From contig NC_087245.1 of assembly GCF_037042905.1 (NCBI RefSeq), forward strand, positions 19,840,001 to 19,904,000: a DNA stretch of 64,000 bases, given 5' to 3'. A program made the position numbers and the translations under genes. The DNA is from Lytechinus pictus (Eukaryota). Positions within the stretch are counted from its first letter, which is position 1. Every line of letters starts with the position of its first letter. Shown here one piece after another: positions 16,762 through 40,700 of the stretch. The notes beneath the pieces were generated by a model that saw only the letters and a program-made list of their open reading frames with translations, searched no databases and was not told the DNA's origin.

Positions 16762-19700
16762 CTAGATGATGATGAGGGGAAGAAAGGGCGGTTGGTGAGC
16801 AAATGAAAGTAATGTTAATCTAAAAACTGATTTTTGAATAAAGATTGAAACATAGTTCTGATCAAGACAGCCTCAGAGTTATTTTGATGGTGCATTTTGA
16901 TTCACCTAACAAGCATTTGCTGAAAGGCATTGAAATAACTATAACTAAAGCAATTTCATACCATTCAGTTAAAGATCACTTGCACTGCATACAGTTAAGA
17001 ATAACAGGGACTGCAAACAAATGATTTGCCTGACCTTTCAACTGCTATTTGTTATACACATATCTTGAGTGTGAGGGTGCTTGAAGAACAATCATTGTGC
17101 AGTGGACCATTTGAGACCTGCCATCTTAAAACCAACAATAAGTCCCCCATAATGAATTTTGAAAGTTTTATAGGCTTTATAATGAGAAAACAAAGTTTTG
17201 GTTCGGGGTTCATTCAAGCATGAGATGTGCACACTGTGCAAGCTCAGTAAAACTTCCAATCAGTCCCCCCCCCCCAAAAAAAAAATGTCAAAGAAATCCT
17301 TGTATCTTGTATTTCATTTAATTTAACCATTTAAAATTTTGACAGTATGAAGAATTACTCTTTCAGATGAGGTAATTTTCTAATACTTGCTTTTTGAAAA
17401 CCAAATTACTATTTTGGCTATTACAGGGAACATTCCCTGGTACTAATAGTTGGTTTTAGGGGCGGCTGGTCACATTTAAAAATAATATTTTCTGTAATTA
17501 GTTGGCCTGGGACTTTCGGGTATTTTTGATTTCGGGTACTCGTGGTCATTTTCGGGCGGGTACCCGAAAATCATGTCGCATGAAATAATTATGACTGGTA
17601 AAAAAAACCCAATAGGTGACGTCATCCAGCCACTGCGCCACAAGCAAACTTTATGAATGAAAATATAGTAAGCATGCACAGTGCAAGCCTCCCGTGCCCC
17701 ACACAGTATTCCATCAAAACAAGTCTGCAATAATCACCTCGTACCAAAATCGACCTAGAATTCCACTTTCCTATATTTCATATTAATTATGAAAGGTATT
17801 CTCGGAGGATCTGTTTTCTCACCGATACCACACAGGTAAGCAAATTTTGATTACTTATTGCTTTTCCGTAAAAATCTTACAAAGTAGCGTCGATATTACA
17901 TCGTGTTCGTGAGTTTGTAGAATCTATCGCTAAGCTACGTTACATGCACAAAGTCAATTGATTTCCGGGTAGTTTCGGAGTGCCGAATGCGCCAGCCAAT
18001 CACGATTGTGTTACCATAAGGTATATCACCAATCAGAACCGCAATGCATCATGGGATCAAATAGGGGGCTGTTAGCTAGCTCTGCGCACGTGCAGAACTA
18101 GCTAACAGCCCCCTTTTCGATCCCATGATGCATAGCTATTCTAATTAGCGATAAACCTTCTTTACGGTTTATGATGAACTGAAAATGGTAACACGAACGT
18201 GGTTGGCTAGCGCTTCGAACGTATATGCTCAAGCTGCAAAAGAAACATGGCGACGATCGAACGATCTCGGTCACATCATCACTTGAAAAACTTGTATATT
18301 TATGGATACTTCGAGGGTAATTGGTGAGATTCAAAATGAGACTTGTGTACTTTTGTGATGAGTTACAATCATGTCTTACACTACGCAATACAATACATAT
18401 ACGTTATACTGGTAAGCAATTTTCGGGTATCGGGTATTGATTTTTCTACCCGGGTACCCGAGGCTTCCGGGCGGGACCCGGGTTTTAGTCCCAGCCCTAG
18501 TAATTAGGATACAGTTTGAGAGCTGACAATAACTAAACTCTCACCTGCTGACATGATGACCACTGCGGACATCAGAGCATACTCGCTGTCATCCAGCATC
18601 ATTCGATTGACCCTCTGACCAAAGTCAAAGAGGAGATCAAACAGGTTGCCCATGGGCATCTTGTGGGCGTCGACCAGGCTGAAGGTGTCCCCCGTCGTCC
18701 ACCAGTACACCGTGTTGGTTGCCACGTCAACGACGGTTGAGAATCGTATCGTTAATACCTGCGAGGAAGAGGGAGAAGGTATGAAGTAAGATCTTCGAAC
18801 TAGAGGTCAGGATGAAGAGGAGAGGAATGTCTGATTATGGTCTGACCTCATCTCTTGAAAAGTTCGGACACTACTTTACAAAAACCTGTAATGTTAAATC
18901 ATGGATCCTACCACGTAGAATGGTCCACAGTTAAAGGTCATTTGTTGTTTCCATGGTATTTTGCATTGGCTTATATCCGAAATATTTCTTTCTGTTTTAA
19001 AAGATGACAACAAAATGAAATAAGATTGGAAATTACGGCCTTATAGGTAGATCAGATACAGAGTATAAGATGCAGGTGGCTGGAGGACTTAAGTGATTAA
19101 CAAAGGTGTCTGGATAAGTGATTTCCTGATTGCATCAGGTTGTATCTTCAATCTTTAATGATTAATATAGGAACTTATTTTATTCTTAAATTTAATTAAA
19201 ATAAGATGTTCGATATATCATGTAGCCATGATAAAAATTGGGGTCTTACTTCACCAGTTTCATTTAAAAAATGACAAATGAGGTTACGTTAAATTTCATG
19301 AGAAAATATAATTTCATTCAAGCCAGGTGATTATAGGAAACACACAAAACAGATCTCCCTAAGAAATTGGTAAAAAGGCACTACAGTATGAATAATTTTC
19401 TTTTTAAATTATCTTAATTTTAGAATATTTATTGTGCTCTTACTTCAAATAGTCCTGTCTTGATGAGCGTGATCTGATCCTCTCTGTCCAGTTGCTTAAA
19501 GCCAGGGATCATCTTACTGAAGTTGACAATCCTGGTGATTTGACTGGTGAACTTGTTGGAGAAGAAAGTCCACATCTTCTGACCATCGATGGGGCCGTCA
19601 GCAGGATCCAACTCCCTGGGTGGGATGGGACTGGTGGGGAATCCTGGAGGAGGATCGCACTTGCTGCAGTCATGGTCGTACTTGGAGTGTAACTGCAAAG

Positions 19701-22700
19701 TTATTGGTTTGGGGGAAAAAGCAAGGTTTTATTGTAACAGTTGACTGTTTGGGATAAAGAAATGGGCATAATGTTGTTTGATGTGAATGCCATTGGAGTC
19801 ATTCCTTACTTTCTGATTCAGTGATATAATGAGATCTCAGCTATGAACTAGCCTTCTTTGTCTATCCAGGAAAATTCTGTTTTCTTCTTTGCTTAAATGT
19901 AATTACTGACTGGCAAAAAGCTCATACAGTAAATATTATTGCATTAAATGTATATTTTATGTAATTTGGAAATGACACATACATAAAAAAAATCAGAATA
20001 CAATCAGGTAGTATGTCATAGATGGATAATTGAAAGAGAACAGAAGAGGAAGGTCAAAAGGAGTTAAATAAGAAATATGATGGAAGTGATGTGGAAGAGG
20101 TTCATCGTGGTGAAGGATTGAGTAGCAGAAATAACCAGTTGTCTCACGATGTACGTAGAATGTACTACGTTTGATACATCGTGAGAAAACTGGTTATTTC
20201 TCCTACTCAATGATGGAAGTCTTAGACAAGTTGGAACTGGAAAAGAGAAACATGCAAGCAGAGACCAGATTCAGATGGAAGTCAAGAACTTTAATATTTC
20301 TGTTTGATACTCACCCTTCCATTAAGTTCTTCATCTTCTCCAAGCTGAGGGAAATATCGTTCCCTCAAGAATTTAATTCTTCTGAAGGTATAATGGCAGG
20401 TGTCGTGGTAGACCTTGTTGACATCATGAATGATCTTCTCAAGCTTTGTCTTCATCTCTGGCGTGATGGGTTCATTGGGGTTGAAGTTTTCCAGCATCCC
20501 ACTTCTAGGAGTGTCAATCTTTGGTTCATCCTGCAGCCCAGGTTCCTCCTTGATGAATGGCTTGTGGTTCTGATGAGGAGATGACGGCGACTTCGACGGA
20601 TGAAGGGATGGAGAGAAGGACGGCGACCTCTCGGACTTATCGGGGTCTGGCGTTGACCGGACTCTTTGATGGAGCGGGTTGTGAGGAGATTTGGGATTGA
20701 GAGGTGAATGGTTGCTCTTGCGATCCATGGAGGCGGCATGGTGCATTTTGGCGTTGTGGACCATGAAGGGACTACCCATGGGGGACATGGCCATGGAGAG
20801 GTGAGGGGGAGAGGCTGGCATGAAGGATGAGGAGATTGCAAGAGGAGGTCTGGTCATGGCAATAGGAGACCAGGGTGAACCCAGAGGTGAATGGGAGGGC
20901 AGGAATGTTGCCGGGGACATACCCTGAGGGAAGGATGAGGGAATTTGAAAAAATTGGCCACTGTGGCCCTGAAGCGGTGAATATGAAGTGATCTGCTTGC
21001 CGTGCGGGAGTGGGAATTCCTCTAGTGACTTGCGTCGCTTCATTGACACCCCGTGCGCGTATTTCGAAGATGACGGGGAATCTCTGCTATCTGATCTGTT
21101 ACTCTTCTCTTCGTCATCATCGCGATCACGATCGTCCATATCTGCATCGAGGTCTTTCTGATTGTCAATCACCACTACTGTTGGACTTGGCGGTATAACT
21201 ATATCCCTGTGCCCTTTTTCTCCTTCCCTCCCTTCCCTGGAGACGTCTTTAGGTATTAATATAACAGGTTGTCCTGATCGTAGCATCTTTGAGATGGTAG
21301 ACATAGGTAGCCTGCTGTACGCAGCCTCATCTACCTCCATGGCGGTGGGCGGCTCATTACTATTAGGGGCACTTTCTGTGCGGTACGTACAATGCGAATA
21401 CTCCTCCTCAAACTTATCAAACTTACTCTGGGGTACGTTCGGTGAGGTGTCTTGCCTCTGTGCAGTGTTATTACCCGGTGAACTCAATTTGACAGCTGAA
21501 TACAGATCGACGCCATTGCCTCTGGGATCTCCTGCCCTGAACGGTGGGGTTGATAAACTTGTGATTGTCGGTGATTGCATGGCACTCTGCTGCATGGTGG
21601 CTGATGGGCACGTGTCTTGACAGCCCGTGACTGATGATCGTCGACTGTGGATCGGTGGTGGGGAGCCCTCAGGTGGTGTTGAGGTTTCGTTAAAGGCAGG
21701 AGGGTCTCGTTCCTGACCCCCTTGCTCGAGTTCTTGTTTGATGATGGTGGAGATGGAGCGCATGTGTTCCATGACCACCTGTGGATTGACTTGCCCATCT
21801 CCTCCCAACATGGCTGCCATGGGGAATCCCCCCATTCCACCTCCCATAGAAGGATGGCCATACATGGCACCCATGCCTCCCATAGGCATACCACCCATCC
21901 CTGGAGGCATATGGTGCCCTAGCATCGCTCCCTGAGGTCCACCTGGATGGTTCATGCCTCCTGGTGGCATTCCGCCTGGTCCGTACTTCCCTTGGGCAAA
22001 CAGGTCTGGATGGTTGCTATAGAAACCAGCTGGCTTCACTGTCATGTCCCCCTGATTACGTTGTTTGGCGATGGTCTCATGCATCTTCTCTATCATCCGT
22101 TTTGATCTCCGACCTAATCTGGATCCTGCATTCAACATAAAAACACAGAAAAGTGCAAAGAAACAATTACCAAATAAATCCCAAGACAAAATCACACATC
22201 ATTTGATGTGAACCTCAACGATTACTTTTCAGAAGTCAATATTTAAAAAATATTGAATGAGTAAAGGCAGGCAATTTCTACTGACATGGCAGACCAAACA
22301 AACATTTTTAACATCAACCCATAGCCATTTGAAATTGGCCATATACAAATTGAAGTCTCAGAGATTTACAGAAACACAATGTAAAAGGTTTAACAAAAAT
22401 GAGCTGCTTGAAACTTTATATTGACAGAAGGCTAAGAAACCAATTGCTTAAATATCTCTGCAAGACTGGGTAACAAGATATCATTGAATAATTTCTTTTG
22501 ATTACAAAAAATATCTATTTATATGAAAGTGGGATTATCCTTTTCTTCAAGTTCTTGGGCTCCCTCACTCCCCACTTACATTTTGTTCATATTAGGGAGT
22601 TGATTCTCAGCATACCTTCTTTAAAGAACAGAATACACATTGCACATTACTCTATTACTTGATAATTGACCTTAAAGTGAGAAATATCCAGGTCTCAGAT

Positions 22701-25700
22701 CGGAAATTCGAACTTAATGGGTGTGATTGTCGCCCCCTTGGTTCCGATTATTGTGCATTCCTAGACATTTCCTCTTCCAATTGGAAGTTAATTGGGGCTG
22801 CCCATGCTCGGCATATTGAATAGCTCAATAAAGTGAGAGGGATCAGGATTGGACATTCTATGGGTAAGTTACACTGCTTTGAGAATGATTGTGATGGGTG
22901 TGTGGGTGTGGGTGTGTGTGTGTGTGTGTGTGTGTACAAGGGGGGGGGGGGTGGACTCCTCAGATGCAAAGCATCTATTTCAAAGAATGATATCATATTA
23001 ATAAAACAATTTAAAAACAACAGAGAAATTTTTAGGATAGTAGGAGATTGTTCCTTCCCTTGTATTTTAAAAATAATATTCTTAGAAAGCCCATATATGT
23101 GATGAGAGTAGCATTGTTTTTTTTTCATTTGCAATAATTACACAAAGAAAATTTATTTTTTTCCTTATGAAATGCAGCTATGTTAATACAATTATAAAAA
23201 AATGAAAATTTCTAAAAATCAATAACTAATATGTAACAAAAAAGACTCAATAGAAAAAAGAGAAAGGGACTCTGGGAGGATAAACTGATTATAGATGGTA
23301 TGATCGACAATACTTAATTTAGATTAATATCTGTCAAAGATAGGAAGGTTTAACTATAGATCAAAAAGGTCAATTTGAAACATCTATATTAGAAATGAAA
23401 AAGGGAGAGGAGACAGGGAGAGAGAGAGAGAAGAACAACCTTAGAATAAGAAAAAACAGCCGACTTAAATGAAGGCAGACAGACAAACCGAGAGATGAAT
23501 AGACAAACAAATAAGGGAAGATTTGAAAAGTAAACCTTGCATTGCTGTTAACCCGAGACGCATCAATACAACCCCGCCTCACACATCCATCGACGGGACC
23601 GGTCTAAACCCTAGATGACGTATCTTTGATGGATCTCTGACTAGCGTCTCCTGATTGCTCCGATATTAACCCAAGATTGACCAGTAATCAAGGCATACGC
23701 AGCCATCACCCTACTAGCTACTTTAATCAATTTCCAAACAAGAGACCAAGAAGTTGGGAGGAAGGGAGATCTAAATTGGATGTGAAAACAGTCGCATTGG
23801 CCTTCACCTCCATTATACGTCTGACTCAGTTTGCTTTCCCTTTCTGCTTTGTTTCTCAGATACCATACTTATGACCCTGGCCTCTACCCATCTCCTTCAT
23901 GTCTTGCCACTTGTCTGATATTCTTTATAATTTTAGTCAAATTTTCATATTTTCATAATACATTCAAATTAAACAACATCGAAATTCCCAAATATTGTCT
24001 AACCTTCTTTACTGATTATGCAGATCAAGTAATCAAATAGAATATAACCGAAATGAAAATCGTTAGAAAAAAAGGATTTTTTATGTATCAACTTCCAGCC
24101 CCTTCATTCACAAATCTACTCCTTTACCTTCTCAATATACATGTATATCACTCACAATGAGAAAGATTCTATTTTCATGATTCACTACCCTTGTACTAAT
24201 TGTAAATACTACTCCCCAATCTTCCATTCCAGTCCTAGCAATATGTATCATTCTTTCTGCTACATTCTCCTCCCTCTATGCATCATACATCCATCTACAT
24301 CAGTTCTGCAATATTATCCCTCATACACTCTTTCCTCATCTATTCATCTCCTCCCATCATCCTTTTGTCGGCTACTTTCTTGACCGTCTCCCTCTCGGGT
24401 CCCGTGGCTGAAGATTGACCAGTAATAACGTTGTGGTCCATCCCAGTGGCTCCATTGGTAATTTGCAGTGGGAGTCGAAAGGAAGGGTATCTAAATTGGA
24501 TGTGAAAACACAGCGCATGGACTTTGCTGGAGCAAGCATTGTCATCTCATCTTATGATCATTTTCTCTTCTAATCATATGATATATCTTACACAATTTTT
24601 TTTTATACCATTGGATGCACGCTTAGCTTACATGTAAGATGTAACAATATAAGTTACCCTCTTCTTTCTCTTCCCATTCTCTCATCTTCTTTTTTCTCTC
24701 TTTGTTTCTCTCTCTTTATCCATCCCTTTGCATTTCTCTAATCTCCCTCTCTCTGTTTTTTCCTATCTCATGCTTTTTACAAACTTTACAAAACGCAAAA
24801 AGTACAATTTACCCCACCATTTTGCCCCATTTCTGTGACTTTGAGAATGAGGAATTGTTCATTACCTTAAACCCATACAGTGGAAAATTGAGTTTTCATC
24901 GGGTAATTATGGCTCACTTCTCCTATTTACTCAACACTTTACTATCTCCAAGGTTTTTTTATGAGAATGATGATTGCAATAATCCATAATTATAAAAAAA
25001 AGACAATGGCAATATCACTACTTTTATCACTACCTCATGATGGCAGCTATTACTACAACTAATACTTCTACTACTTCTTCTACTACTACTACCACTAGGT
25101 CTATTATCACTACTTTTCTCTCTAAAAACACAGTAGAGAGTAAAGTGACAGCGTTTTCCACACTTTTTAAAAAGTGTTTTCATTTTTTCTTCTACTTTTT
25201 CGACTTCTACTACTCTCACTACTACTACTACCACTACTACTACTCTCACTACTACTATTACAATTAAGATTTAAGCAACATTCGCACAGCAATGCAGCAA
25301 ATTCCCTCTTTACAATCCCAAAATACAATATTATACAGCAACATGGCACTCGGCCAAAGTAATTTATTTAGATTGTTCTACTAATTTATCCCCTTCTGAC
25401 AATGAATCTAAATGTCGGTTGTACATATGTAATCATGGCCATTACTGGAGCCTGCAAAATAATTCCCTTGAAAAAATAATTACTCTAATCTAAATTCTCC
25501 AGACAACTTTCATTTGGCATTCTTTTAACCTTCATTTTTTTACCAAGATAATATATGCAATATACAAATTCCTCTGAACTGGGGGGGGGGGGGGGGGAGA
25601 CAATAGGTCCTATCATAAATATTGTATAAGCTTTAAACTGGTATATATATATGAATTATCAAGGTCATGTGATAAATGAGTGTCTTAAAAATATTACAGA

Positions 25701-28700
25701 AAATAATTCTGTCTGACAACTTCATAAAGAAAATTCGGAGAATGATTTTACAGTAAAAGAAGCGGTCATATACATTTCATAAACTCTCACATGAATAGTA
25801 GAACTTCAGATACCATTTCCTAACTGTACAATGCCACGGTTGAGACATACAGTACCTCGCACTTTCGTAGGTATATATACATAATATATATATATATATA
25901 TATATATACAGTCCATATGCAACTGACCATGAATCTGTAACTGTTAACACACTTGTTTTCCTCTCTTCATCTATTTTATCTTTCCTTCTTTCCTCATGCA
26001 TAATTGTAAAAGTCTTTTAAGTTTGCAATTCTCTATGTATTAGAGTTGGATTGTTTTGCAATGTATATTGTATTAATATGGATGCAGCAAATAAAAGAAT
26101 GAATAAATGAATATATTTAAATAAAGTTTCATTTCAAAGCTTTCTCTTAATCTCTCTTTATGCTTCACTTAACTTGTTTTGTTAATCAGCATGTAGAAAC
26201 TCAAAATTCCTCTATAACTTTTCATAATAGGTTTTAATTTTTGTATACTTCACCAACAATTATCCGGTATGTGTGAACATGCAAGAAATTAATGGGTGTG
26301 ACCTTGATATTGCTTGCCATATTCATTCATTTTGTGAAGATTGATGGCACCCTGTACATTGTAAATACATTACAAATATACCCATATTAAAATTTTTAAT
26401 ACATCAAATATTTTATATTATTTCCAAGACTTGACATAGGGTTCTAAATATCCATACAAACCTATAATAATCACTTCTTTTTACGATGCTCATTTTAACA
26501 ATTATGGGGTGGAAATTTATGATGGCTTTAGCAGAACAGCTCTTACATGATCTGTGTTTAAAGGAATAAAATCCTGCTCAGTCTAAATTAACCTCAACTG
26601 GGTTGAGTGCAGTACAATGGGTATGGATTTCTTACTGAAGGGAATTAATGCATACATTAGGATTTGAACCCATGACACTCTGATTAAGAGATGTGAATTA
26701 AAACCACTTCACCATAACATTTATAATGATTGTATGATGGTGTGTGTTATTGTTTCTTAAACTATATCCAAACAAAATATGGTTGCTCTGATTTAAGAAA
26801 AAAAAATTGTTCATTTACCTGAAAATTTAATCAGATATACACCCATATTTCATTATCTATGAACCTCCTTGCTTTCTTAACATTTCATTTATGTTACTAA
26901 ATATTATACTTAAAATTTCTTCTGGGGATATACAATGTGTATCCTACTATTTGCTTGCTTTAAGATAGCATGTTTTCACCTAATTTGTAACGGCAAGGAA
27001 AAAGGCACCACACCAGAAGCTCAATGGTTGGATAGACGGATAATTATAAATAAACACTGTAAAAAACCAATTCTCTGAGAAGAATGAAGTTATTGGTGTG
27101 ATAATGTACCAGTACGCAATTAATATATAATGCAAACTTGTATCCTATGCATTTGTTTCTGCTGTCTAATACTGCACAATTTTGGGATAAACAGGCCAAG
27201 TGGGACTCTAATAATTCCCATAATTGTAATTACTGAACAGCTCTATTGTCTATAGAGAATGATCGGACCCTTTCGGGATCAACCCATGCACGAATACTTT
27301 GCTTTAAGAGCGATCTGCAGATGGCAGGTACACGGAACAATCCACAATTACATTTAATTTCACAGACAAATGAAACTCCCAATGGCCTTGAGTGAAAAAT
27401 ACACATGGGTAATCAAGAGTGTAGAATGTTTTCTGCTTTTGAATGTTATATGTTAGCAATTAATCTACAGCATGTGTCCCAAAACTTTTTTTTATTTTGA
27501 GTTGAAAAACCGAAGGTTGGTCTTGTCCGATGCTAATCACCAGAGAGCTAATGAATTCTTTGTCGCTTCGTCAATGCCGAGGTCAATAAAAATATTTGGG
27601 ACTTTAAAGGATACATGCTATTTGTGAATAACCTCTACTTGCAATAAAGTAAGTGTGTAGATAATCTGAACATGTATGGTAGTGGATCGTATTACCGAAC
27701 ACTTTTCATGAATTCAATCATATCAAACACATTATTCTCATAAAATTCACCAAACTTTCACCATGAATACACAATTACCTACAAAATATAAATATGTAAA
27801 AAATTTGCCAAAATTGTTTTTCATTTTAATTATATATGTTTTAAATCGGACCCCTCTTCGCATGTGAAATATTTTGGTCACTTGAAAAAGGTATCGTATT
27901 ACCGAACGTGTGTTTTCTATGGGAAAAGTTGAGAAAACAACAAGATTACTGATGAGCTATTTTGACCATATTTTATTATTTTTAGAATTTCAAGACTTTG
28001 AAAATGTGTTTTCGACCATTTTTCATCACCTTTCTATTCAAGTTCCCTTTGGAAGGGTGTTGCAAACTTTTGAGCGTATGAAATTATTTTTTGATGCATA
28101 CGATACGCGCGTTCGGTAATACAAGGCCGATTGGTAATACAATCACTCACTATACATGTGAAAGTCTTTGAGCAAAAACCTAAAGCACATCCACATGAAA
28201 CTCCAAAAAATAAGTCTGACATAGCAACACACTTTTTTTGTGCAAATTTGATCCAAACGTGACTCATAGATTAAATAAATATATATATATATATGGATGT
28301 TTCTAGGTGCCCAATTTAAATTGTAAACGCATAAATTGTAATATTCTGTTGAAGCATTCTATCGTTCACTTCCTGGATGTATTCCTCTTTTAGAAAATGA
28401 ATTAAAAACATATCACAAGTCACCTATGTTTTCTTGTGAATGAAAAAGGAAAACAAAAATACTTTTCCATGTTTTAAATACTGGTGGTTATTACAGGTCA
28501 CTGGAGACATGAACAAACTATGAACTAGTCTATTGTTAACAATGAAATATTTTAATGCACACATCTTTGTTAAGTCATTAAGACTTTTTACTCTGCTTAT
28601 GAAAATAATTTTGCCAAAATTCATAATGTCATTTTCAAGCATCGAGTATTTGTCACAAATTCAGGTATTTGTTAATACATTATTTCTAATAGCAAGGAGG

Positions 28701-31700
28701 AAATCTAAAGGCCTATATCAATATACTGAAAAATTTTGATTAAAGTATCTGAAGTCAAGTTTGAAACTCCCCCTCTTATTCAATATGGAGTATATTATTG
28801 TCATATACAAAATAATATTCTGCTCTAAACGTCAGTGATGAAATTTATTAATAAAGATTTCCCTTCTTGCAAGATAAAAAAGTTGTTAAAAATTAAAATT
28901 CCATTTGAACTTTGAAGTGTTAGAAATTTTGGAATTAACATCAAACGATCTACAACTCAATACTCCTTTCTTTATGAACATTCCCTTCAGTTCCTACATG
29001 AACGTCCATGACCCATTTTCACCTCTTTTTAATGACCACTTAAAAATACATTTCTTTTGAAATAGCTTCACACAAAACCCCTCTCATCTTAATGAAACAC
29101 TATTGTATCATGCTTTTGATTTGCAGCGCCAATTTAACTAATTTACACAACGACTTATTGTTAATGAAACAATTCATATTTCAGAGGAAATGTGAGCAAA
29201 GTCTGTGTCCTGAATAAGATAATTAATAGATGAGGTATTCTTCCATGAATTGGCTTATGAGATAATCAACAAGGTCGATTACTATACAAATAAAAAGTTG
29301 ATCAAAGAAACCAGGTGAAATGAAAGCTTGTAGTAATTAGTTAGTGTCTGATCATGCAGAGTACATTGTTACACATTCATAATAGAAGCAGCTTGTTAAT
29401 ATAAGTGGTTCTGGTGTAAGATTAATCTTTATATTACAAGTTATCAATTTGAAAGGTATTCATGAAAATTTAATTTTCTCAGGGGCAAAGAATTGGGGAT
29501 TTAGCTTTTTACACCTTAACGTCACAGCAATTAGCAGAGGTGTTGCGGCTCAGTGGAAAAGTCTCCTGACTTTGAACCACAAGGTCTGGGGTTTGAATAC
29601 TTCCGCAGCACTCGCGTCCTTTGGCAAGGCGTTTATCTACATTTGCCACTCTCCACCCAGGTGTGGTAAATGAGTACCCGGTAGGAAAGAATTCCTTGAA
29701 TGCTCGAGCACCCGAACAAGGTGGCCATGCTAAAACCGGGTTAAAAGTATGCACTGCTTAGATACATTGTAGTAATCACAATATATTTTAATTATTAAAG
29801 GGGAATCCAGCCTTGGCCATAAAATGTTGTGTTGGGAAGGAGAAAAATAAATTAAACAGAATGGTGAAAGTTTGAAAGAAATCGGACAAGCATTAAGAAA
29901 GTTATAGCTGCTTTAAAATTGAGATCACTAATACTATGTAGATTTCAAATTGGCAACTGAGTGAGTAAATTATGACAAGGGGCAAGGACAACTTTCCCAT
30001 AGGCCATGTACTTTATTATCAGGGATTTGTGGTTTTCTCCTAAGTACCCATTCCCCTGGGGCAGTAATCTAAATATTACCCAGGTAGTATATTGTTTTAT
30101 GTCCTCATGAAAGAAAAATATAATTTGAAATAAAACTTTTGGGAAAAATGACATTTTAGCCAAAATATATATTGGAGTTCATGGAAGAGTAGTCCTCGCC
30201 TTACATCACTATGACATCCCATATGCGGCCAATTTTAAGTCTCCATGGGTATAGTGATTACCAATATTTACAACTGTAAAAATTCATAACTTTCTTGTTG
30301 TTTGTCCAATATTGTTCAAACTTTCACCTATCAACTTGTCTGATTTTTCTTTTCCCTATAAAAACAAGTTTTTATTTGGGTTGGATTCCCCTTTAATAAA
30401 AAAAAATTATCCAAAAGATTAGTGTACAATTTCAACATGAATATGCCAATTTGAACACACCAAGTGTTATTCCAAAATCAAGAACTTTACAGTCATCGAG
30501 GACTGTAACACAAAGCTTGCTGTCTAATCACAAAGTTCTTTTGTACAATTAATTGCACATGATGAACAATGCAACTGATTTCAAACATCAGCCACATCAT
30601 TCAATTAAAACTTTGTGTAGCCAGACTCAGAACAAGAGGTAATGGCTTGGTCACAAATACCATTAATAAACACTATACAAATGCCGCACAAATGATTGTA
30701 AGAACAGTACAAGAACCATGTAAGGTTTTGTACCATTGAGAGACAATTCTAGAAGTCTTGAATTCTTACAATGATCGTAAGAACACCTGAAGTTGTTCAA
30801 AGAGGGCTGGCGTTCATATGAAATGAGATATGTATGGTGCTCTTACAAATGACTCATGGGGTTCTGTCTGGTAGTTCAGACAAACTCATTGCATATTTTA
30901 TGCTGACTTTGTTACAATTCAATAGGCCTTACTTCACTTCCATTTCTGAACCTACAGTTATGAATGAATGAAATATTCATAACACGAAAAAAAATTTACC
31001 AAATTCTGGATTTTATATGGCAAAACACTTTAATTATCATCTCAGACTGCTTGGTATTTTGTGTTAAACAAATGCTCTTTTAAGTTTTACGATTCTTGAA
31101 TCACCTAATAATAATAGGGCAAAAAATTTAAATTTTATTTTTTTCTCCGTGAACATGATCATTGGAGTAATTCTGCAAGTGATAGCAAACTTTATATTGA
31201 TTTCTTCTCATGATATTTATTGAAAAAGAACTTAACTTAGTAAAAATTAAAAGATATAATAAGATATATCTGATGGAGACAGAGTTCTTTATAGGCCTAA
31301 GTTTATTGGCTCCCCTTAATATTTTTACTATCAAAATTGTATTTCGTCTTCTTTTAACTCCTTATCTCTGGAGTATTTGTTATAAACAGAACAAACAAGT
31401 AACTCTCCCTTTTCAAATGCTATAACTTAGTTATAAAAAAATAATTGAACAAAATGATTTAGAAGAAATATTGCTTCCCTAATTTACAATTTCTGTATAA
31501 AGTCATGCGTGAGTCAGCATGCACTAAATACAAAAAAAATTAATTTAGAATTAAGCTCATTGGAAGAATTAGGATCAAATATTGTTAGCAAATGTATCTT
31601 CATAAGTTATATAAATATGAGAGACTATAACAATTTCATGGCTGAGTGAGTACACTTAATTATTAAAGTAAATGTAACAATTTTTTGTCATTCAAGATTA

Positions 31701-34700
31701 GTTTAAAATAAAAACATAATGGTATTCTGAAAAAGGGGGTTAACATTTTGTTCAGCATATTCAATATTTACATATTTTGTATTAAAGCACTGTTTAAGAT
31801 GGTTCCATGACATTTTCTCTGGCGACAATTGCTCAGATGGAAAATCTGCAGGTTACACCAAATACATAATCTCACCTCCATAACTAAATAAACCCTAATC
31901 CTTATCTTTACATTATTCTGAACCAAAAACTATTACAATCTTAACTCTAACCTCTATGCCCTCTGAGATATTAAGACCGGATCAATTGTCCAGGAGCAAA
32001 TGTCGTGCCACCCTAAGGTGAACTAAGTTGAACTGGATAAAAGCTTTTTGCAGTGTTCGGAAGTAAAAATGAATAAAAAATATTAATGTTTCATAATCAC
32101 TTAAATTTGTCATAACCGTGTAATAAAAGCTGTCACATCTTTGCTATTACCAAATCATAAGAAGCCTTCTTGATTCACCTATTTCATTTCTACCAATATA
32201 TTTTAATTGTTTATTTCCCATATAAACAATACAACTTAAATATCCCAATTCTAATTTCATTTTCAATTATGAGGCATTCACTAACATCTTTGAGTAAACA
32301 AATGAATGTCAATATATTTTGAATAAGCCTTTTGGAGAAGTCAATATGTCTGACTGCAGCATATTTTATCACCTAACAAAAAATATCTGTCTCCAAATTC
32401 ATCTACTATAAATCATGATTGTTTCCGCCATAAAGTGCTACTACATAGACAGTGGTTCTTGGTGATTGACTCAAAGGTCTTGTCATCCAGCTTGTTGAAA
32501 TGCAAAATTTATGAACCACTGCATTAATAACAAGTAACTTATTTAAAGATAAAAACAACAACAACAAAAAAGGATATACATAAAATGCATAAAATGATTT
32601 AAAAACATGAAATAAGAGCATTAAAGTATAGGTAAGTCAGCTACTGAGAGGTAAAAAAATGAAAGAGAAAGAAATCTCTGGGTACAGATGGGTTACATGA
32701 CTTTGTGACCAAAAAATGATGATGGGCACACAAACAGAAAAGATAAACGAGGGAGGAGTTTTGGATGATGTCATGAATAATTGATGCCAGGTTTCTCAAT
32801 TACGGCTTTTCATTAAGAGCCCAGCCTATGATATATTCATCAGGCGAAGTGCAACGAAAACCGGGTTCATGGTCGCCGTCGAAGGCTACTCTTTCCAAGA
32901 GCGGGAGGCCATGCTGTGTGGAGTTTGAGATCGGGTTTTCCAGACAACCTGTTGGTGAGTGTCCCGAGAGAGGGGCCAGTATGAGGCAACATGACATGAA
33001 ATTCACAGGAGCCTGACATTCCAAAGGGGAGAAATAAGACCAATTCCTTGTAAACTGGAGCTCCAACATTACTGAGTACTCTTACTTGTAATTCATGCAA
33101 ATAATGAACAGGGCATAAAGATTGAGCAGGATGTTAAGTCAGAGGCAATGATGCGAGTAAATGTAATTATGATGGAGGATGAAATATTGATGAAAATCAG
33201 ATATTAAAATTATTTAAAGGGGAAATCTATAGCTAACATTAAAGACCTTGTTGGTTGATCCAATACAAATGTGTTTACAGCAAAAAACATAATGATGAAT
33301 TGAGAATTCATTTTTGATGTGTCATGCTACACACACAGATGTATGTCCACATCAACAGCTATCTTGCATTGTATTTTTTCATATACCTTATGAAAAGATA
33401 TTGTTTTTTATAAACAAGATTTTAGACTTTTTATATCAGCAATAATGACAGCCAACATGAATAACAAATTACCACGCTTTTCCCCCCAATGATTCCCTAT
33501 TCATGGGACAACATTTAGTTGTGTTCTGAATAGAATTTGTGAAATATCATTTCATTACAAAAAGATCATCCACTGACATTGATTTTTCATCTTCACTTAA
33601 CAAGCTTAAACACAGGTCTTATATACAACAGAAAGATATAAAAGATGGTCGAAACCAACTATTTAATTGCTCTTAAACACCATCACTTTGAAAATTATAC
33701 CAAATGAAATGTAAAATTAAAGTGTTGTTCTATATTTCCTGAATGCTGCAGTCACATTACCCCTCTGGTGCCCGCATGGTGAGTCAAACACAGCTGTTTT
33801 ATTCAAACCACCTATATGTAGCTGGTACAAAAATGTTAACATGGCTGTTTTTTACTTGCGGTACTGCCACTGTAGGGGAAATGTGACGGCGCCATTAGGA
33901 AGTTAAGCCCAATTAGAATTATAAAAAAACACATGAGTTTGATTATTTTATTTGACAGAATTTGTATGATTTCTTTAGCACAAGGAAAGGTATATTGCAG
34001 GTGCATTTAATATTTCATCTTTCTAACCTTGATATAATGGCCATGAGACAATGAGAATTATTACATTTCAGCTGCAATCTACGGTAACAAACCAATATTA
34101 CTGATCAAATGAAATGAGGCAAATTTTCACCAGCATCAGTTAAGGAATTCTTGTATTTGGGAAAGTATCACCTTTTTCTTGCATTCACAATATAGACACT
34201 GTCTACTACAATGAGTTCCTATAACTATTTTTTCCTTCTTTATAAATCAATTATCAACTCTAGGTTAGCCTTTGTGACTTGCAAATTTTACTCTAGACAT
34301 TTAATTCTATAATTTTTACCTATAAAAATATTGACATAAAAATCACTGTTGGGTTTGGTTAAAAAGTCAGGAAGTAAACAAGAAATAATAACTCTTAATG
34401 AATAAATGTTTGAAATAAAATTTGTTCCTACTAAGAGCTTTGGAAAGTAAATGTTCAATTTACATTATCTATTTCTTCCAGATATTTTCAGTTCTGTAGG
34501 TTTTTAAAAGGGATAATGCAGACACATCTCAAATTTATCGTTCCGAAACAGTTGAATCAGTACAAAACAATAGAAACCACATCATCTATTATTCAAAGGG
34601 TACAAATGCCAGATGGATTTAGGAGGGGCAGCGCAAGAGTATTTTGATGTGAGTGTGGGGGGGGGGAACTGTAAGCAAGAGTAAATGAATTATAAATAAA

Positions 34701-37700
34701 ACAACAAGGTTGCTATATAGATATTGGACAACCAAGCCTTCTTCTCTCCCATACCCTTGTTTTCAGCGGTGGTTGCCCCCTTCCCCTACCTGACCGGTTT
34801 ACCAACATTGCATAGAAGTTGGCTTTAATGGGGATGAGAATAGATCATTAATTAACCATTAATACTATAGAATCATTTAGAAAACTCACATTTCCTTCCT
34901 ATTGGGTTATTTTCAGTCTTGCAGGGCTGCAGCGCTTTATTAAAACCATCAAAGTTCAGGGTTACAACTCTATCACAATAAATGTCAATTTAGACCGGAA
35001 AATTTTGTAATAAAGGCCAAGGTAACATCCCGACCCCTCCTGTCTTTTTCCTGTAAATGCTACTTGGATTTTAGTTGGATTTTTTTAGTCCATTAAAATA
35101 ATACGGGTAATTATCACATAAATCAGTGTCAACACCTCCAAAATGATGTTGAAACTGAACTAAATTGAGATTTACTCCAATTCATCTTGAACTATGAAAG
35201 TAAGCATCAACAACTTTGCTCTGAGCCAATCAAACGCAATTCGGCCCTCAGAACTTCTCCATCTGGCCAGTGACACTTTGCTGAATTTTTATTTTTTTAA
35301 ATCACTTATATGTCACTATATGAAACATGCCTCAATATTATTATATTGTGTGTCCACGCAACTGAAATAAAACTAATGGCAGTCAAAATAATATGGCTTT
35401 CAAAAAAAGTTCAGTGAGTTTTGAGTTGTTTCTGCCGGTTCTTCTTTGTTATTTGATGTCATAGAAGTCCCTAACTAACTCAGTCTGGCCAGCTATTGAA
35501 AAACAAAATTATGATTACTACTGGCTTTCACTGAATTTTGAAATCTGGTCTAAGTTTGCCTGTATTTTTTCATATAAAACTGTTATGAATTTTTTGGATA
35601 AAATTCTCACAAAATTAAATTGCACAAGAGAACATCTAGAACCCCTAAGCCTCAAGGGCCGTAAGTGGGACCTGTACGCCAGCAGCAAGGGACTTTCTGT
35701 TCCACACTTGCTCATAAGTTAAGGCATTACAAGTAGGGGTTATCTAAAGTGAAAGTCAGATAAACTAATCATACTGGTAGATTGGGTAGGAAACATCAGA
35801 ATGTTAAATCTTTGATCTTCTGAAAAGGTTCAATCATAAATTCATGATCGTTAACCAATGAATGAAATGATAAATACCAGCATAAAAATGGCTGGTGTAG
35901 GCCCCTTCATATAAATATAAACACTTTATAAGACTTGACTTTCATTTTTTTTACCGCACTGAAGTTGGTTGTTCTGTCGAGAAAGAAGAAAGAAATCAGT
36001 TCCAAAGCTTCGCATATTTTTCGTTACGCCCACAATGATCTGCTACAATTAGCTGCATTTTTGGTGAAAAGCGGCCGCAGAGCGCTGTCTGACCATCGCC
36101 TCTGCGCGAGCGCACCCGGCGCCCGTGCCGCCGGACTAGCTGCATGCACGTATGCCCGTTCCATAGGGATGCATACGCACTCACACGCAGGCAACCCGTT
36201 CCAAGGACCCTCGTTTTCACAAACATTTGTAGTTCCGAAGCCCGTTCCAAGGACCCTCCTTTTTACAATATGCCCGCTCCAGAGCCTCCGTTTTTTGTCT
36301 CGCCCACGGCACATACCTACCACTTTTTTGGCCGAGTACCCCCCCCCCCCCCCCCCCCCGGGACCTACTCGAGATGATCGGGGCAGAGCTGCCAAGTTGT
36401 ATTTTGCATTTTCAGTATTCTTATCCCTCAAAATCAGTATTTTTACCGTATGAGATATATATGCAGACCTGCCAACCTCTGGGAATGAAAAACTGTATTC
36501 TGTGATTAAAAAAAATGTATTTTTCCCTAAAAAAAGTGTATTTCATAATAAAATGCTTGGCGCACTCGCTCATCGCGGCGCTCAAGCTGCATTCAAGCTA
36601 AAATGCGCACTGCTCTTGCAGATGAAAAAAACAACATAAAAACATGTGTATATCTCCACCCTGGTTTTAACAAAATGATTGAAAAAAAAAACAAGTTACC
36701 TGAAATAACATTGATCTAATAACCATATTTGTGTATGTTTTATGAAATAGAGACATATAGAGATTATTTTTCTCAATAAATTACGATTTAGTAAAAAATA
36801 AATAAAAAAAAAGTATTTTCCAAAGAAAAAACGTACTGCCGTATTTTGGTTGCAAAAACGTACTAAATACGGCTAAAACATACTGGTTGGCAGGTCTGCC
36901 AGGGGCACGTTCATCAGGAGTTGCAATCAAACGTAACTTGATCAACCAATCAGAAGCCTGTATTTGGGACTTGCATTTGATTTTGTGAGTTGTGATTAAA
37001 TGTGACTCTACCTGCAACAGTCTCTAGGGTTTGAGATACATACTCCTCTACCTTGGAACACAAATGTTGTGACAAATAGATTGCAAAGCAAACATGACCA
37101 ATTATAAGCATTCATGAATCCGGGGGGGGGGGGGGGGGAATCAAATTATATTTTCATGGGGGTGTGCCTCACAAATTCCTGAAATGGGGGTCTAAGGAAC
37201 TGACCACACGGGTAATATACGGGGTCTTGGGAACTAAATATATACTGGGCAATGTGAAAAACAGGGTCTGCGGAACGGGATTGTGGTACAGTAGGTACGG
37301 TGCACGCTAGCACTTTGCATGTAGATGTGGGCACTAGCAGTGCATGGAGCTGCTAACGGAGGGAGTCGTGAAGCCATGCATGCAGCTCGCGTTGGACAAT
37401 TTTGGCAGGGCAAGGGAACTGAGGTGTTTCGTAACGGGGGTCTTGCGAGCGGGGCGGCTTCTGAATGGAACTTTTGTCATTCGGAGTATCTAGAGAACTG
37501 AAAGTTAGGTCTGAAAAAGGGGGCCATCAAAGCAGCACGTCCCCTTACCACCAATGAGTGCCCCCCCCCCCCCGGGTGTTGAATATGCATTTTGTTCAAA
37601 ACACATTCCAGTAACCAATGTGAATTGCCATTTCAAATGTGCAATTGATCACAAATCATTGTGATACAGGCCTACAGGGGCCTGGTCATCTACTTCTCTC

Positions 37701-40700
37701 ATCGGAACTGAGGACATAAGACAATCACACCTGCACGTTTCCAAATCATCCAGTTATTTCTGATCCAGCAAAACATCCCAATTTAGAACGAGCTGCAGAT
37801 AATTTCTAATGAAGATGCAATCAATTTTGTTTTTTCGATAAGCTTCGAATCTCAAGATTACAATTGGGAGTCAACTCAAGGCTTTTATGGAAAATAGCAT
37901 TGGTTTACAGCAAGTTTTCCAACCCAATTCTCAGGGGAGGACATGCCTCAAGCTCAAGTGAGAATCCCTGATTCAGAGTTTCTTGAACCCCAAGATTAAT
38001 CAGAGAGGACTAATTTGACTACAATCTTGAGAAAGGACAAACTCTGACTTTTGATGGGCTGACCATTTGACCATTGCTTAATGGTGGCCTCCTGAATTAT
38101 GCAACTCCCTAAATAAAGGGAAAGACAAAGAAAAATAAATGTGCTCCAGTTTACAGGAAAGGGGGTGTTAACACAATTTGTTTTAATCTTGGCAATATCT
38201 GGTGTAGCTACAATCATGGACCTATTGCTACAATAGAGTCATTACAATTCCTACACCCAGACAAAAATAATAGAGGATGAGAGGAGATATTAATTTCAAA
38301 AGATCTCAGGCGACATCAAATTACGTTTTAATAAACATTATCATCCACTTTAGAAAATATACAAAATACCAGCACAAGTATAGCTTGCGTGTACGTAAAA
38401 AGTTCAAGGATATGCTGGGTTGATTTTAACCTAATCGAATGTCAAAAAAGGTTTTTACTTTCAGTACAAAAATGACAAAACGAAATACTTTTTGTTATAT
38501 ATCAGTGATAGTTCTGAAAACATTTGTGTGTGTCTGACCATGCACTGGTACAACAATGTGACTAAAATGTCTATAAAACAAGAAAAGAAACAGAGCATTT
38601 GCTTACTACTACAAAAGAGTAGAGGAAAATGGTATAGATTTCAAAGAGAAACACTGCAGAAAGGGAAATTATGAAATATTGTTAATATGATTCCGACGAG
38701 GTGACTTGTGTCTTTGAGTAACATCATTCATTTTGTGTTCCAATCATACTTATTGTTTTTATTGCCCTTTTGGCATACTGTATGAAAAGTGGGAAGATTT
38801 CACATCAAAAAAGCCAAGAGATGAAGTAAAAATTTTTTGGGGGGAGAAGAAATATTTCCCTAATACAAGAGCTTGTACATGTACATCATTTATTAATTTG
38901 CTGACATTGAGGTGGTATAACCAGCATACTGATTAGACATGGTTCCAAAAGTCTGCGCCGCGTCTTTTAGTAGGAATCTTGCTAAGGAACTATTATGCTT
39001 TTCACACTGCACATATTTTCCACAACCCCGGATATTGGTGAGGCTCAGGGGGGAGGGGGGGGGGGGTTAAGCTTAGCCCACTTCGGTTTCACGCTATACG
39101 TTTTAGCAAAGTGGGTTAGCACGATAAATAGTGCAGTACTATCTGGCCCTGCAAAAAAGCAGGGTTAGCCGGCTTTAATATTGCGGTGCTAAGACATGCA
39201 GTGTGAAACGAAACCGGGCTAAGCGTTAGCCAATGACAGAAGTCAAAACTGCGCGTTAATCATACTCTGTGTGGCAAAATCATCGATATTCATGAGCTGT
39301 GCGATAGTCCGGTTTAAGGATAGTACGGGGTTAAGGAAATACAGAGTGAAAGGCATTGATGCATCTTTCACACAAGTTTTCTCAAATTCCCCATTGCTTT
39401 GTCTACGATGAAATGTGAAGATAAAAGATGAAAAGATGCTTTGCAGGATTGCTGTGAGTGAGACAGTGCTCTGACTTTTGCCTGCCTTAGGATTAGGGGT
39501 GGAGGCTTATGGGGTTGGAGGATGAGGAGGTTGGAGGATGCAGCATGGGTTGGTATGAGAGAGGGATTTTACGTACCATCTTTTGACATTCCAACGCCAA
39601 GACATTTTTTCCACCTGCAGAGTTGACACTGATTTCTCGTGTAGAGGGATATCTCACATTGTCCATTATTTGAACATGTGTAGGATTCATGTTGGTTGAG
39701 ACTCCGCCTGAAGAATCCCTGCAATGGATATAAAAATACATCAAAGAAAAGAATATATAACTGAAATAACAAGAATATTCTATTCTTATGTAGTTCATTA
39801 TACATTGGAACAGTGTCTATCAGCACGATCATTATTTAGGAAATTATTTGATTTGATTCAACTATCAAAGACAGTTGACGAAGAAAAAAAAAAAAAATCG
39901 AAATTGATATTGGAAAGAGCCAATGTTATAAAGTGTTTGGCATGCATCATTTTTAATTGACTATTTCTCCACTGAGAATGGCAATTTGAATGTATCAAAA
40001 ATTGACATACAAATTTGATATTTAGAAAAAAATTAGACTTCAATTCAATTTCAATTCAATTTTCATTTTATTCAATCATTTAAAAATCAATATACAAACC
40101 AAAATATATAAAAAAAAATCATACATGAATGTAACAGTATAGTGTAAAGTGACTTGAAATGCTACTTCAGGAACTTTTATGAAAATCAAAGACTTTACGA
40201 AGGAATCACATTCACACAGGGATAGAACAAAATAATGAGGTAATAGGGAAGACCCCAAGGCCATTACATAAGTTACTATTATAGTAACTTCACCCTCCAA
40301 TGGTACATTCTATGGAATCCTTGATTTTGATTGGCTGTTGATGTGACTATGGTAATTACCACTAGAAAGCAAGGTTATGATATTGGTATCTATTTGTGCT
40401 TAAAGGTGTGGTTCTGTTTGAAAATATATTTTGAATGAAACATATATATGAGAAGTGTGAGATTTTTATAATGAAATAATGCTGACAGTCGTGACAATGG
40501 GGGAAGGGGGGGGGCATATATTCTCTCAAAACAAAATCAAGGGAGTAGAATCAAACCACTTTTTACGACACTAACTTTTATAAATCTTATTTACAATTGG
40601 ACTCATCAAAATTTGTATCCTCCTTAAGTGTTTTCAGCTAAGTCTTGCACATTACTATATTTACTTCATATATATTGTACTCTTAGTGTAATCTTTGAAT

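Follow-up and report, generated by a model that had tools for sequence, protein, structure and literature searches.

A nuclear receptor gene of the sea urchin Lytechinus pictus, lying in a stretch of 64,000 nucleotides (contig NC_087245.1; hereafter the window, which contains 0 N), raises the question of how a receptor with a full LBD comes to carry a C-terminal extension (CTE) that reads like that of the knirps family (NR0A), whose members have no LBD. To our knowledge, no settled account exists of how the knirps family arose. The kni-box of this family comprises 19 residues adjoining the zinc fingers and is fully conserved among arthropods (PMC2774871, PMC7074177). An earlier note, made from the letters alone, proposed that the gene may be part of an invertebrate NR1 lineage, poorly characterised so far and close to the LBD-bearing ancestor of knirps. 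The explanation that we favour as a whole, with a probability of roughly 0.7, combines an NR1CDEF-type identity, binding to AGGTCA half-sites, an LBD nearest to Rev-erb/E75 and PPAR, and a CTE variant shared with other receptor groups.

The gene encodes a complete, expressed receptor. Seven exons on the minus strand (55440-16493; Table 1), with GT/AG at every exon border, join into a coding sequence of 2838 nt with 0 internal stops, giving a protein of 945 aa. The RefSeq model LOC121425969 (protein P0001) of Lytechinus variegatus has equal length, 10 residue differences, no indels, the same N-terminus and the same 39577/22125 junction. Read on the minus strand, AAAGATG/gtacgt closes the finger-2 exon at 39577 and tgcag/GATCCAGATTAGGTCGGAGATCAAAACGGATG opens the next one at 22125, dividing the Gly codon as G/GA. 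The peptide across this junction reads exactly as the earlier note had given it, and RefSeq, RNA contigs and orthologues all agree with the splice and its peptide. In Logan contigs from two runs, X1 (3632 nt) and X2 (8121 nt), the interval 20315/19692 is spliced out, and position 22125/6 is joined directly to the reverse complement of ...AAATGTCTTGGCGTTGGAATGTCAAAAGAT, with which the finger-2 exon ends, so that the spliced contigs of both runs use the 39577/22125 junction rather than another splice; their loose end at 19441 carries on into exon 6. The same junction is found in orthologues from four echinoderm classes and from hemichordates, and echinoids, asteroids, one holothuroid, crinoids and three hemichordates all retain the pattern GMSK[DE][GA]...[KR]M.

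Table 1. Parts of the receptor gene, in window positions
Feature	Position	Strand	Content
Exon 1	55377..55440	-	Start codon and first 21 residues (MIPRYY...LHA); ends in phase 1; donor gtaa
Exon 2	51000..51088	-	Zinc finger 1, P-box EGCK/G; Pfam zf-C4, E 4e-9
Exon 3	39577..39718	-	GFFRRS, D-box, zinc finger 2, start of CTE to GMSKD(G); zf-C4, E 6e-17
Intron	22126..39576	-	17451 bp, phase 1, splits Gly codon before SRLGRR; GT 39576-5, AG 22127-6
CTE, start of exon 4	22040..22125	-	GRIP-box variant R-L-G-R-R-S
Exon 4 remainder	20315..22039	-	Low-complexity hinge and LBD start (helix 1 region); RNA-covered
Exon 5	19444..19692	-	LBD helices 3-4; Pfam Hormone_recep, E 1.5e-5
Exon 6	18545..18758	-	Mid-LBD; Pfam Hormone_recep, E 5e-3
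Exon 7	16493..16761	-	LBD end: helix-11 His, AF-2-like PPLHAEIFD, stop; aligned with Rev-erb beta LBD

The protein has the C4 double-finger DBD and C-terminal LBD that define the nuclear receptor superfamily (Pfam; PF00105 and PF00104 are on record for P0001), and it contains CEGCKGFFRRS. Exon 3 was recovered in the genome search as G000:C1:19879581-19879721. Between the two domains lies a hinge of about 575-600 aa, and the remainder of exon 4 gave no Pfam match. In trees with TR/RAR as the outgroup, the gene nests among the NR1C-F groups. One clade unites the gene's ambulacrarian group with two spiralian groups and a second ambulacrarian group (P0054, P0055, P0152), supported by an SH-aLRT of 99 in a quick tree, by 95/78 in a careful concatenated tree and by 99/96 in an LBD-only tree. 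Within this clade, the gene's group joins the alpha-type spiralian group in the concatenated tree (71/68) and the second ambulacrarian group in the LBD tree (80/91). When the trees use the DBD only, the alpha-type group stays in the clade and the other two groups, beta-type spiralian and second ambulacrarian, fall outside it.

The two spiralian groups correspond to receptors described as NR1CDEF alpha and beta in Crassostrea gigas, a set that also takes in MgNR1DEF of Mytilus (Vogeler et al. 2014, PMC4070562); the correspondence is drawn from oyster primer peptides and not from deposited oyster sequences. The translated CgNR1CDEF alpha primers give peptides present in the C. gigas protein P0276, with an amplicon length off by 93 bp, and those for beta fit the C. 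virginica protein P0113 at 681 bp apart, against a published amplicon of 680 bp. The gene is monophyletic with the mollusc members in both the DBD+LBD and the LBD trees, and its SRLGRRSKR fits the CTE pattern of the group, [SK]-[LI]-G-R-R-[SP]-[KR]. Elsewhere in the clade, the CTE reads CKLGRRSKK in the second ambulacrarian group, SRLGRRPKR in the alpha type and AKLGRRSRK in the beta type (with flanks, ASRLGRRPKR and AAKLGRRSRKM in the oyster and Mytilus proteins, which are likewise full-length receptors). The alpha type further shares with the gene the D-box and finger 2 pattern CSN..CEI...TRN.CQ.CR.KKC. The gene is an NR1 orphan of an old bilaterian group, which bears the oyster name NR1CDEF, and is the sea urchin orthologue within it.

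We note two differences from the mollusc receptors. First, the hinge of the urchin protein is far longer. Second, the gene has Lys-Asp/Glu-Gly/Ala before SR and Ser rather than Pro after RR, and with these flanking residues the ambulacrarian branch holds the most knirps-like version of the clade's CTE. The NR1CDEF-type group is little studied and has so far been described in molluscs only; no paper describing deuterostome members was found in the literature searched, and the group was not found in chordates or arthropods in these searches. With a deuterostome member, the group ranks as an ancient NR1 lineage of bilaterians.

Could the gene instead be the urchin orthologue of canonical Rev-erb/E75, E78 or ROR, with a CTE that has drifted? 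We consider this very improbable. Rev-erb is the best solved match for both domains (Rev-erb alpha 1A6Y for the DBD, gap-free through the CTE; Rev-erb beta for the LBD, with 144 bits and PPAR gamma next at 113 bits), NCBI's automatic names for the crinoid and hemichordate orthologues are NR1D1/2-like, and a tree of the DBD core only joins the gene's group to an E75-type row (84/90). However, each union is rejected by the AU test, and each canonical CTE is distinct: E78 (NR1E; p 7.6e-38) reads SVRYGRVPK, Rev-erb/E75 (NR1D; p 1.2e-4) reads AVRFGR[IV]PK and ROR/HR3 (NR1F; p 7.4e-3) reads AVKFGRMSKKQR. This is in keeping with the poorly characterised lineage that the earlier note had proposed. Moreover, ambulacrarians have separate E78-like proteins (P0097, P0147), which cluster with E78 in the trees, and other NR1 genes (P0114, P0165), and a separate E75/Rev-erb-type gene lies next door. 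Finally, the CTE is fixed in about five echinoderm/hemichordate lineages and is therefore not the product of drift. The LBD had also been described as E78/ROR-like; this does not hold, since the LBD-only tree places it beside PPAR and E75/Rev-erb, away from E78 and ROR.

The neighbouring E75-type gene (C1:19833678-19839660, plus strand) stands tail-to-tail with the receptor gene and clusters with E75/Rev-erb in the concatenated tree (96/73). The receptor's LBD is nearest to Rev-erb/E75 and PPAR. This arrangement of the two genes, shown in this genome only, is what a local duplication of old date would leave; in Glandiceps, by comparison, an unrelated gene lies 8 kb downstream of the E75-like one. 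Rev-erb/E75 receptors share with the gene the CTE length, the R-x-G-R spacing, the helix-11 His and the intron positions. They differ in the CTE (GS-RLGR-RS in the gene versus AV-RFGR-[IV]P), and the inter-finger loop of the gene is one residue shorter than that of E75. The gene also retains an AF-2-like helix, which vertebrate Rev-erb is not known to have.

With the gene placed in the NR1CDEF group, what remains is the resemblance to knirps, for which real knirps-family genes retrieved from metagenomes served as the comparison set. Within the stretch GMSKxGSRxGRRS, 11 of the 14 residues match. Over the 17 residues after GM, the mean identity to knirps is 0.51 for the gene's orthologue group, the highest sampled, followed by 0.47 for the 2DBD receptors, 0.32 for E75/Rev-erb, 0.30 for E78 and 0.25 for HR3/ROR. 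The earlier observation that the CTE matches the knirps form better than the canonical NR1 forms is borne out by these values, and the likeness, judged by sequence comparison, is real. GMSK.GSR.GRRS is common to KNI, KNRL, EGON and Daphnia KNR-R1 and KNR-R2, and the D-box C.N.GQC of the gene resembles that of Daphnia KNR. The intron between CEGCK and GFF lies at the same place in knirps-family genes, and a phase-1 intron before SR.GRR occurs in some knirps lineages.

These similarities invite a stronger reading, namely that the gene is the closest LBD-bearing relative of knirps, a survivor of the lineage whose loss of the LBD gave rise to arthropod knirps. Besides the top CTE identity, this reading draws on two DBD+CTE trees, in which a 31-row clade holds knirps, the 2DBD receptors and the gene's group (96/97 and 97/87), and on three knirps-family genes (L069, L074, L085) whose intron before SR(L/Y)GRR agrees with that of the gene in position and phase. 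No arthropod member of the NR1CDEF clade was found among the named database matches, and a tardigrade alpha-type member (P0320) has a gene model without an LBD. We nevertheless regard this reading as improbable. In the same two trees, knirps pairs with the second DBD of the 2DBD receptors (100/100 and 100/99), and an exclusive clade of knirps and the gene is 17.4 lnL worse, a borderline rejection (p-AU 0.049). The identity of the zinc-finger core to knirps is mid-range for the gene (46%), below E75/Rev-erb (48%), 2DBD (50%) and PPAR (52%); without the CTE columns, this core gives no significant signal and an unresolved tree. The gene also lacks the P-box region EGCKSFFGR, the finger 1 sequence of knirps (GFHFGAFT; GFHFGA.TCEGCK) and the second half of the kni-box, which runs on as NWFKIHCLLQE. 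As for the phase-1 intron, it occupies an NR1-type position that the E75-like neighbour shares, and thus it does not set the gene apart. The proposed closeness to the knirps ancestor is therefore upheld as far as a supported common DBD+CTE clade, and it falters on the pairing of knirps with 2DBD, the borderline rejection of the exclusive clade and the lack of significant signal in the core. Membership of NR0A itself was rejected on two counts: the protein has a full LBD, AF-2-like helix included, and only the first half of the kni-box is matched, the NWFKIHCLLQ half being replaced.

The knirps-like CTE is also not peculiar to the gene: the GRIP-box variant extends across the NR1CDEF clade and the 2DBD receptors; being common to several receptor groups, it does not mark the gene as a knirps-family ancestor. 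The GRIP-box concept and its 2DBD variants have been described by Wu and LoVerde (2023, PMC10497141), and the second DBD of the 2DBD receptors was previously found to cluster near NR1CDEF alpha (Vogeler et al., PMC4070562). Its CTE, GMS(K/I)(D/E)GSRIGRQ(P/S)N, resembles that of the gene except for Gln in place of the second Arg after the GRIP core, and support for grouping 2DBD receptors with the gene's clade is 72/94 in the concatenated tree and 96-97 in the DBD+CTE trees. Their LBD sits elsewhere, with TR/RAR on a long branch in the LBD-only tree. Unlike these receptors with two DBDs, the 945-aa protein has one DBD only and is not itself a 2DBD receptor; the urchin 2DBD gene lies elsewhere, at C7:13.49 Mb (L025). 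Within the set sharing the CTE variant, the knirps family appears to sit with the 2DBD receptors, not with the gene.

A more serious competitor, to which we grant a little less than even odds, is convergence, whereby the knirps box and the gene's CTE arose as independent variants of the common NR1 GRIP box (R-x-G-R), and the DBD+CTE trees only restate the CTE similarity, aided by the very long knirps branch. The grouping indeed hinges on 23 CTE columns, and in a free search on the core only, knirps falls within HR3/ROR, its branch being 3.2 changes per site long. The core identity of knirps is flat across NR1 groups (42-52%), a union of knirps with ROR on DBD+CTE is not rejected (p 0.11), and in published trees the position of knirps within NR1 is unstable (PMC2774871). 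Arguing against convergence, forcing knirps+2DBD or the 31-row clade on the core only yields trees that beat the free tree by 2.3 and 4.7 lnL, respectively. Features outside the GRIP box, namely GFHFGA.TCEGCK in finger 1 and N-x-x-K-(x)-H behind the box, are likewise common to knirps and 2DBD, and the AU test rejects (p 0.03) a union of knirps and NR1H/I/J-type DBDs.

We tentatively suggest, as a possibility that is somewhat less likely than not, that knirps is an LBD-less offshoot of a DBD lineage that also yielded the 2DBD receptors and NR1CDEF. If this is true, the GRIP-box variant S-R-x-G-R-(R/Q)-(S/P) and the phase-1 intron that precedes it would both have been inherited, and arthropods, in which neither NR1CDEF nor 2DBD receptors were found in these searches, would have kept the truncated descendant only. 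The urchin receptor would then be among the few LBD-bearing relatives in which a knirps-type CTE can be studied. Among testable candidate relatives of knirps, the 2DBD receptors rank first, followed by the NR1CDEF group.

By analogy with the Rev-erb, ROR and NGFI-B structures, the DBD core of the NR1CDEF-type receptor would read an AGGTCA half-site, and the CTE would lie in the minor groove 5' of it. The CTE aligns gap-free to RFGRIP of Rev-erb alpha and KFGRMS of ROR gamma, and the spacing between the fingers and its R-x-G-R core equals that in Rev-erb, suggesting that the receptor would bind extended half-sites as a monomer or, on repeats, as a dimer. Which flanking bases are favoured may be altered by two clade-specific features, the Ser preceding the box and the Arg-Ser following it, and sea urchin embryos are a tractable system in which to study the effect of a knirps-type CTE on the recognition of half-site flanks. 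In NCBI, the urchin protein is listed as uncharacterised and its crinoid and hemichordate orthologues are automatically named NR1D1/2-like; with the present assignment, a conserved receptor annotated as 'uncharacterized' or mislabelled NR1D-like is both named and placed.

The receptor gene was modelled with seven exons, with GT/AG at every exon border, and its CDS of 2838 nt carries one stop, which is terminal, giving a protein of 945 aa. Pfam places zf-C4 in both finger exons and Hormone_recep in the ligand-binding domain (LBD) exons. The finger-2 exon, read on the minus strand, stops at 39577 with ...GGAATGTCAAAAGATG and is followed by a gtacgt donor, while a tgcag acceptor precedes the next exon at 22125, and a Gly codon is divided G|GA across the junction. 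The spliced product therefore reads the 22-residue junction peptide of the earlier note. A query with the large exon matched a RefSeq "uncharacterized protein LOC121425969" of Lytechinus variegatus (P0001, 945 aa), which shows 10 residue differences and 0 indels relative to our model, so the same junction is also used by an independent annotation.

Exons of the receptor gene (window coordinates) and neighbouring nuclear receptor loci (chromosome G000:C1)
Feature	Position	Strand	Remark
Exon 1	55440-55377	-	GT/AG model
Exon 2	51088-51000	-	GT/AG model
Exon 3, finger 2	39718-39577	-	GT/AG model
Exon 4, large exon	22125-20315	-	GT/AG model
Exon 5	19692-19444	-	GT/AG model
Exon 6	18758-18545	-	GT/AG model
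Exon 7	16761-16493	-	GT/AG model
E75/Rev-erb-type receptor gene	19833678-19839660 (L032:1678-7660)	+	0.3-6.3 kb left of window base 1
NR4A-type DBD (L026)	17.39 Mb		same chromosome
TR-type DBD (L022)	17.83 Mb		same chromosome
RAR-type DBD (L019)	18.88 Mb		same chromosome
E75-type DBD (L023)	19.83 Mb		same chromosome

RNA runs were mapped on positions 19300-22500 of the window (3201 letters), and two runs of one study yielded spliced contigs of 3.6 and 8.1 kb; all RNA evidence for the junction comes from the contigs of this single study. Beyond 22125/6 these contigs carry, reverse-complemented, the final 30 bases of the finger-2 exon; they leave out the intron 20315/19692, and beyond 19441 they pass into exon 6. 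Raw reads of runs X20 and X21, at sampled depth, cover intronic repeat only. The contigs of both runs thus show the 39577/22125 junction rather than a different splice, and the junction claimed in the earlier note, together with its peptide, is upheld by the sequence, by P0001 and by RNA. Within the intron between exons 4 and 5, the stretch 20087-20211 reaches a contig and read depth of about 240-640, vs. 8-39 on exons, and is flanked by many differing loose ends; it is a dispersed, transcribed repeat. A patch at 36000-38000 within the 17-kb intron has a G+C content of 0.44, vs. ~0.34 in its surroundings, and holds several Gly/Arg-rich minus-strand open frames, each 50-170 codons long; the patch is possibly what remains of a transposon.

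The window corresponds to G000:C1:19840001-19904000. The E75/Rev-erb-type neighbour, just left of it, and the gene studied lie tail-to-tail, with the 3′ end of the neighbour ~17 kb from the stop codon of the gene. The neighbour's DNA-binding domain (DBD) has a C-terminal extension (CTE), AVRLGRCPKKCKP, that includes AVRLGRCPKK, its LBD is Rev-erb-like, and its orthologues cluster with E75/Rev-erb (branch support 96/73). The final LBD exon of the neighbour, which ends ...NIFDGGK, shows no evident AF-2 motif. Both genes possess a phase-1 intron after GMSKD. Altogether, 2.5 Mb of one chromosome holds NR4A-, TR-, RAR- and E75-type DBDs and the gene studied (window, 19.86-19.90 Mb), resembling the THRA-NR1D1-RARA linkage of vertebrates. 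In Drosophila, kni, knrl, eg, E75 and E78 are all located on chromosome arm 3L. In the hemichordate Glandiceps, the gene 8 kb downstream of the E75-like gene encodes an unrelated Q/T-rich protein, so the adjacency was not recovered there; for the E75-like gene and the orthologue of the gene studied, only the listed scaffold lengths agree.

Orthologues bearing the CTE (GMSK[DE][GA]...[KR]M) were found in another echinoid, three sea stars, a sea cucumber, two crinoids and three hemichordates, and the ~30 residues C-terminal to the fingers are almost invariant across echinoderms. The CTE is thus strongly constrained, rather than an oddity of a single gene model. Among ~350 receptors, gathered by an exhaustive whole-protein HMMER search and two word-indexed searches and named via cluster look-ups, the CTE form [SK]-[LI]-G-R-R-[SP] is common to four groups: the orthologue group of the gene studied; a second ambulacrarian group of two hemichordates and a brittle star, with the P-box C[DE]GCKSFFSR; a spiralian group with GMSREASRLGRRPKR (molluscs, annelids, nemerteans, a brachiopod, bryozoans and rotifers); and a spiralian group with GMSRSAAKLGRRSRKM (molluscs, a brachiopod and a nemertean). 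Together they make up a single clade, which is recovered in a quick DBD+LBD tree of 84 rows (SH-aLRT 99), in a careful 80-row tree (95/78) and in an LBD-only tree (99/96). The clade adjoins PPAR and E75/Rev-erb, while E78 and HR3/ROR are clades of their own, each including ambulacrarian members.

The AU test rejects uniting the gene's group with any of three others, namely E78 (67 lnL worse; p 8e-38), E75/Rev-erb (46 lnL worse; p 1e-4) and ROR/HR3 (50 lnL worse; p 7e-3), which bears out the proposed membership in a poorly characterised NR1 lineage. Among solved structures, the top DBD is that of Rev-erb alpha, with a gap-free alignment through the CTE, and the top LBD is that of Rev-erb beta (144 bits), whose His aligns with the helix-11 His of the gene studied, followed by PPAR gamma (113 bits). 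The LBD had been described as E78/ROR-like; however, these best matches and the position of the clade beside PPAR and E75/Rev-erb contradict that description. The members of the second ambulacrarian group, P0054 and P0055 (hemichordates) and P0152 (the brittle star Amphiura), possess a short D-box and the CTE GMSK[DE][AS][CA]KLGRR, and their P-box resembles the corresponding region of knirps. No sea urchin copy of this group was recognised among the 30 DBD loci read.

Oyster CgNR1CDEF alpha and beta (deposited as EKC21910 and EKC29666) and MgNR1DEF (ABU89803) were reported as an unresolved "further novel group" nested among NR1C-F (Vogeler et al., PMC4070562). We tied these published names to our groups by translating the PCR primers of that study. 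The alpha primers encode AEANDRF and AVSTMR, and the C. gigas protein in the ASRLGRRPKR group contains both peptides. The beta primers encode NLHKEA and VINMGQ, and both are found in the C. virginica protein belonging to the AAKLGRRSRKM group, in which the primer sites are 681 bp apart vs. the reported amplicon of 680 bp (PMC4070562). This makes the gene studied a deuterostome representative of the NR1CDEF group, and no description of deuterostome members was found in the literature searched. The "unclassified" Biomphalaria receptors (BgNRU), reported near NR0A, were rejected as relatives, as their CEACKGFFHR is of a different type, outside the family.

The gene is intact, expressed and strongly conserved, with the P-box EGCKG, an AF-2-like PPLHAEIF in its LBD and a CTE whose R-x-G-R core is spaced as in the Rev-erb GRIP box (consensus RXGRZP, PMC10497141). 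By analogy with the literature on Rev-erb, ROR and NGFI-B, the receptor core is predicted to bind AGGTCA and the CTE to lie in the minor groove above its 5′ flank, which would result in extended half-site binding. The extra Arg, and the Ser replacing Pro, could change the favoured flank.

For comparison with knirps (NR0A, LBD-less), Daphnia KNR-R1 and KNR-R2 are printed in the supplement of PMC2774871, and knirps genes were obtained by scanning metagenome contigs with a degenerate DNA pattern encoding GSRYGRRSNWFK. The scan returned 80 loci (L034-L113), 35 of them with a complete DBD and the knirps CTE motif (kni-box); no second NR gene was found on these knirps-bearing contigs. Against six diverse knirps DBDs, identity over the 17-residue CTE is highest for the gene's group (0.51), followed by receptors with two tandem DBDs (2DBD, 0.47), E75/Rev-erb (0.32), E78 (0.30) and ROR (0.25), so the knirps-like CTE claimed earlier is real. 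Over the zinc-finger core the gene's group is mid-range (0.46; all groups 0.42-0.52, 2DBD 0.50). The 2DBD receptors (P0123, P0134, P0158, P0181, P0188 and P0192) share GSR.GR..N..K.H with knirps. Outside the GRIP box, GFHFGA.TCEGCK is also common to both, as is N-x-x-K-(x)-H C-terminal to the box; the gene studied has neither of these two.

In three knirps-family genes (L069:847; L074, minus strand; L085:1697), a phase-1 intron interrupts the Gly codon exactly before SRYGRR, matching the intron of the gene studied before SRLGRR. The E75-type neighbour also has this intron, so it is a mark of NR1 rather than of knirps and the gene studied. The same three genes carry IHCLIQ(D/N)Q downstream of the box. 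The Gly-codon intron is missing from most of the remaining knirps genes sampled, and many have an intron at CEGCK|SFFGR.

In DBD+CTE trees of 88 rows and then of 104 rows, with NR1H/I/J-type and NR2-type DBDs added, knirps pairs with the second DBD of the 2DBD receptors (100/100 and 100/99), and this pair falls within a clade (96/97 and 97/87) that also holds the gene's group together with the alpha-type spiralian members and a tardigrade protein. In AU tests on DBD+CTE, joining knirps with the gene's group only is 17.4 lnL worse (p-AU 0.049), with ROR 20.7 worse (p-AU 0.11) and with NR1H/I/J-type receptors 28.7 worse (p-AU 0.03). The grouping signal of knirps lies largely in the CTE columns. 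With the DBD core alone, a free search places knirps inside ROR on a very long branch; however, constrained trees with knirps+2DBD or with the 31-row clade score 2.3 and 4.7 lnL above the free tree, respectively. The core-only trees lack resolution, the free search having overlooked better trees, and the core columns speak neither for nor against the knirps grouping.

The knirps-like CTE is a trait of a wider receptor set, and among LBD-bearing receptors these data place 2DBD nearest to knirps, a placement carried by some 23 columns and a long branch; a statement of this link to the second DBD was not found in the literature examined. The suggestion that the gene stands near the LBD-bearing ancestor of knirps is supported insofar as its group lies in the knirps DBD+CTE clade, but knirps itself pairs with 2DBD, and an exclusive clade of knirps and the gene's group is borderline rejected. 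A tardigrade protein of Hypsibius exemplaris (P0320, 385 aa) has an NR1CDEF-alpha-type DBD with the CTE GMSRSASKVGRRPK, and its gene model ends in a Ser/Thr-rich tail in place of an LBD; either this is an ecdysozoan member that has no LBD, or the model is truncated.
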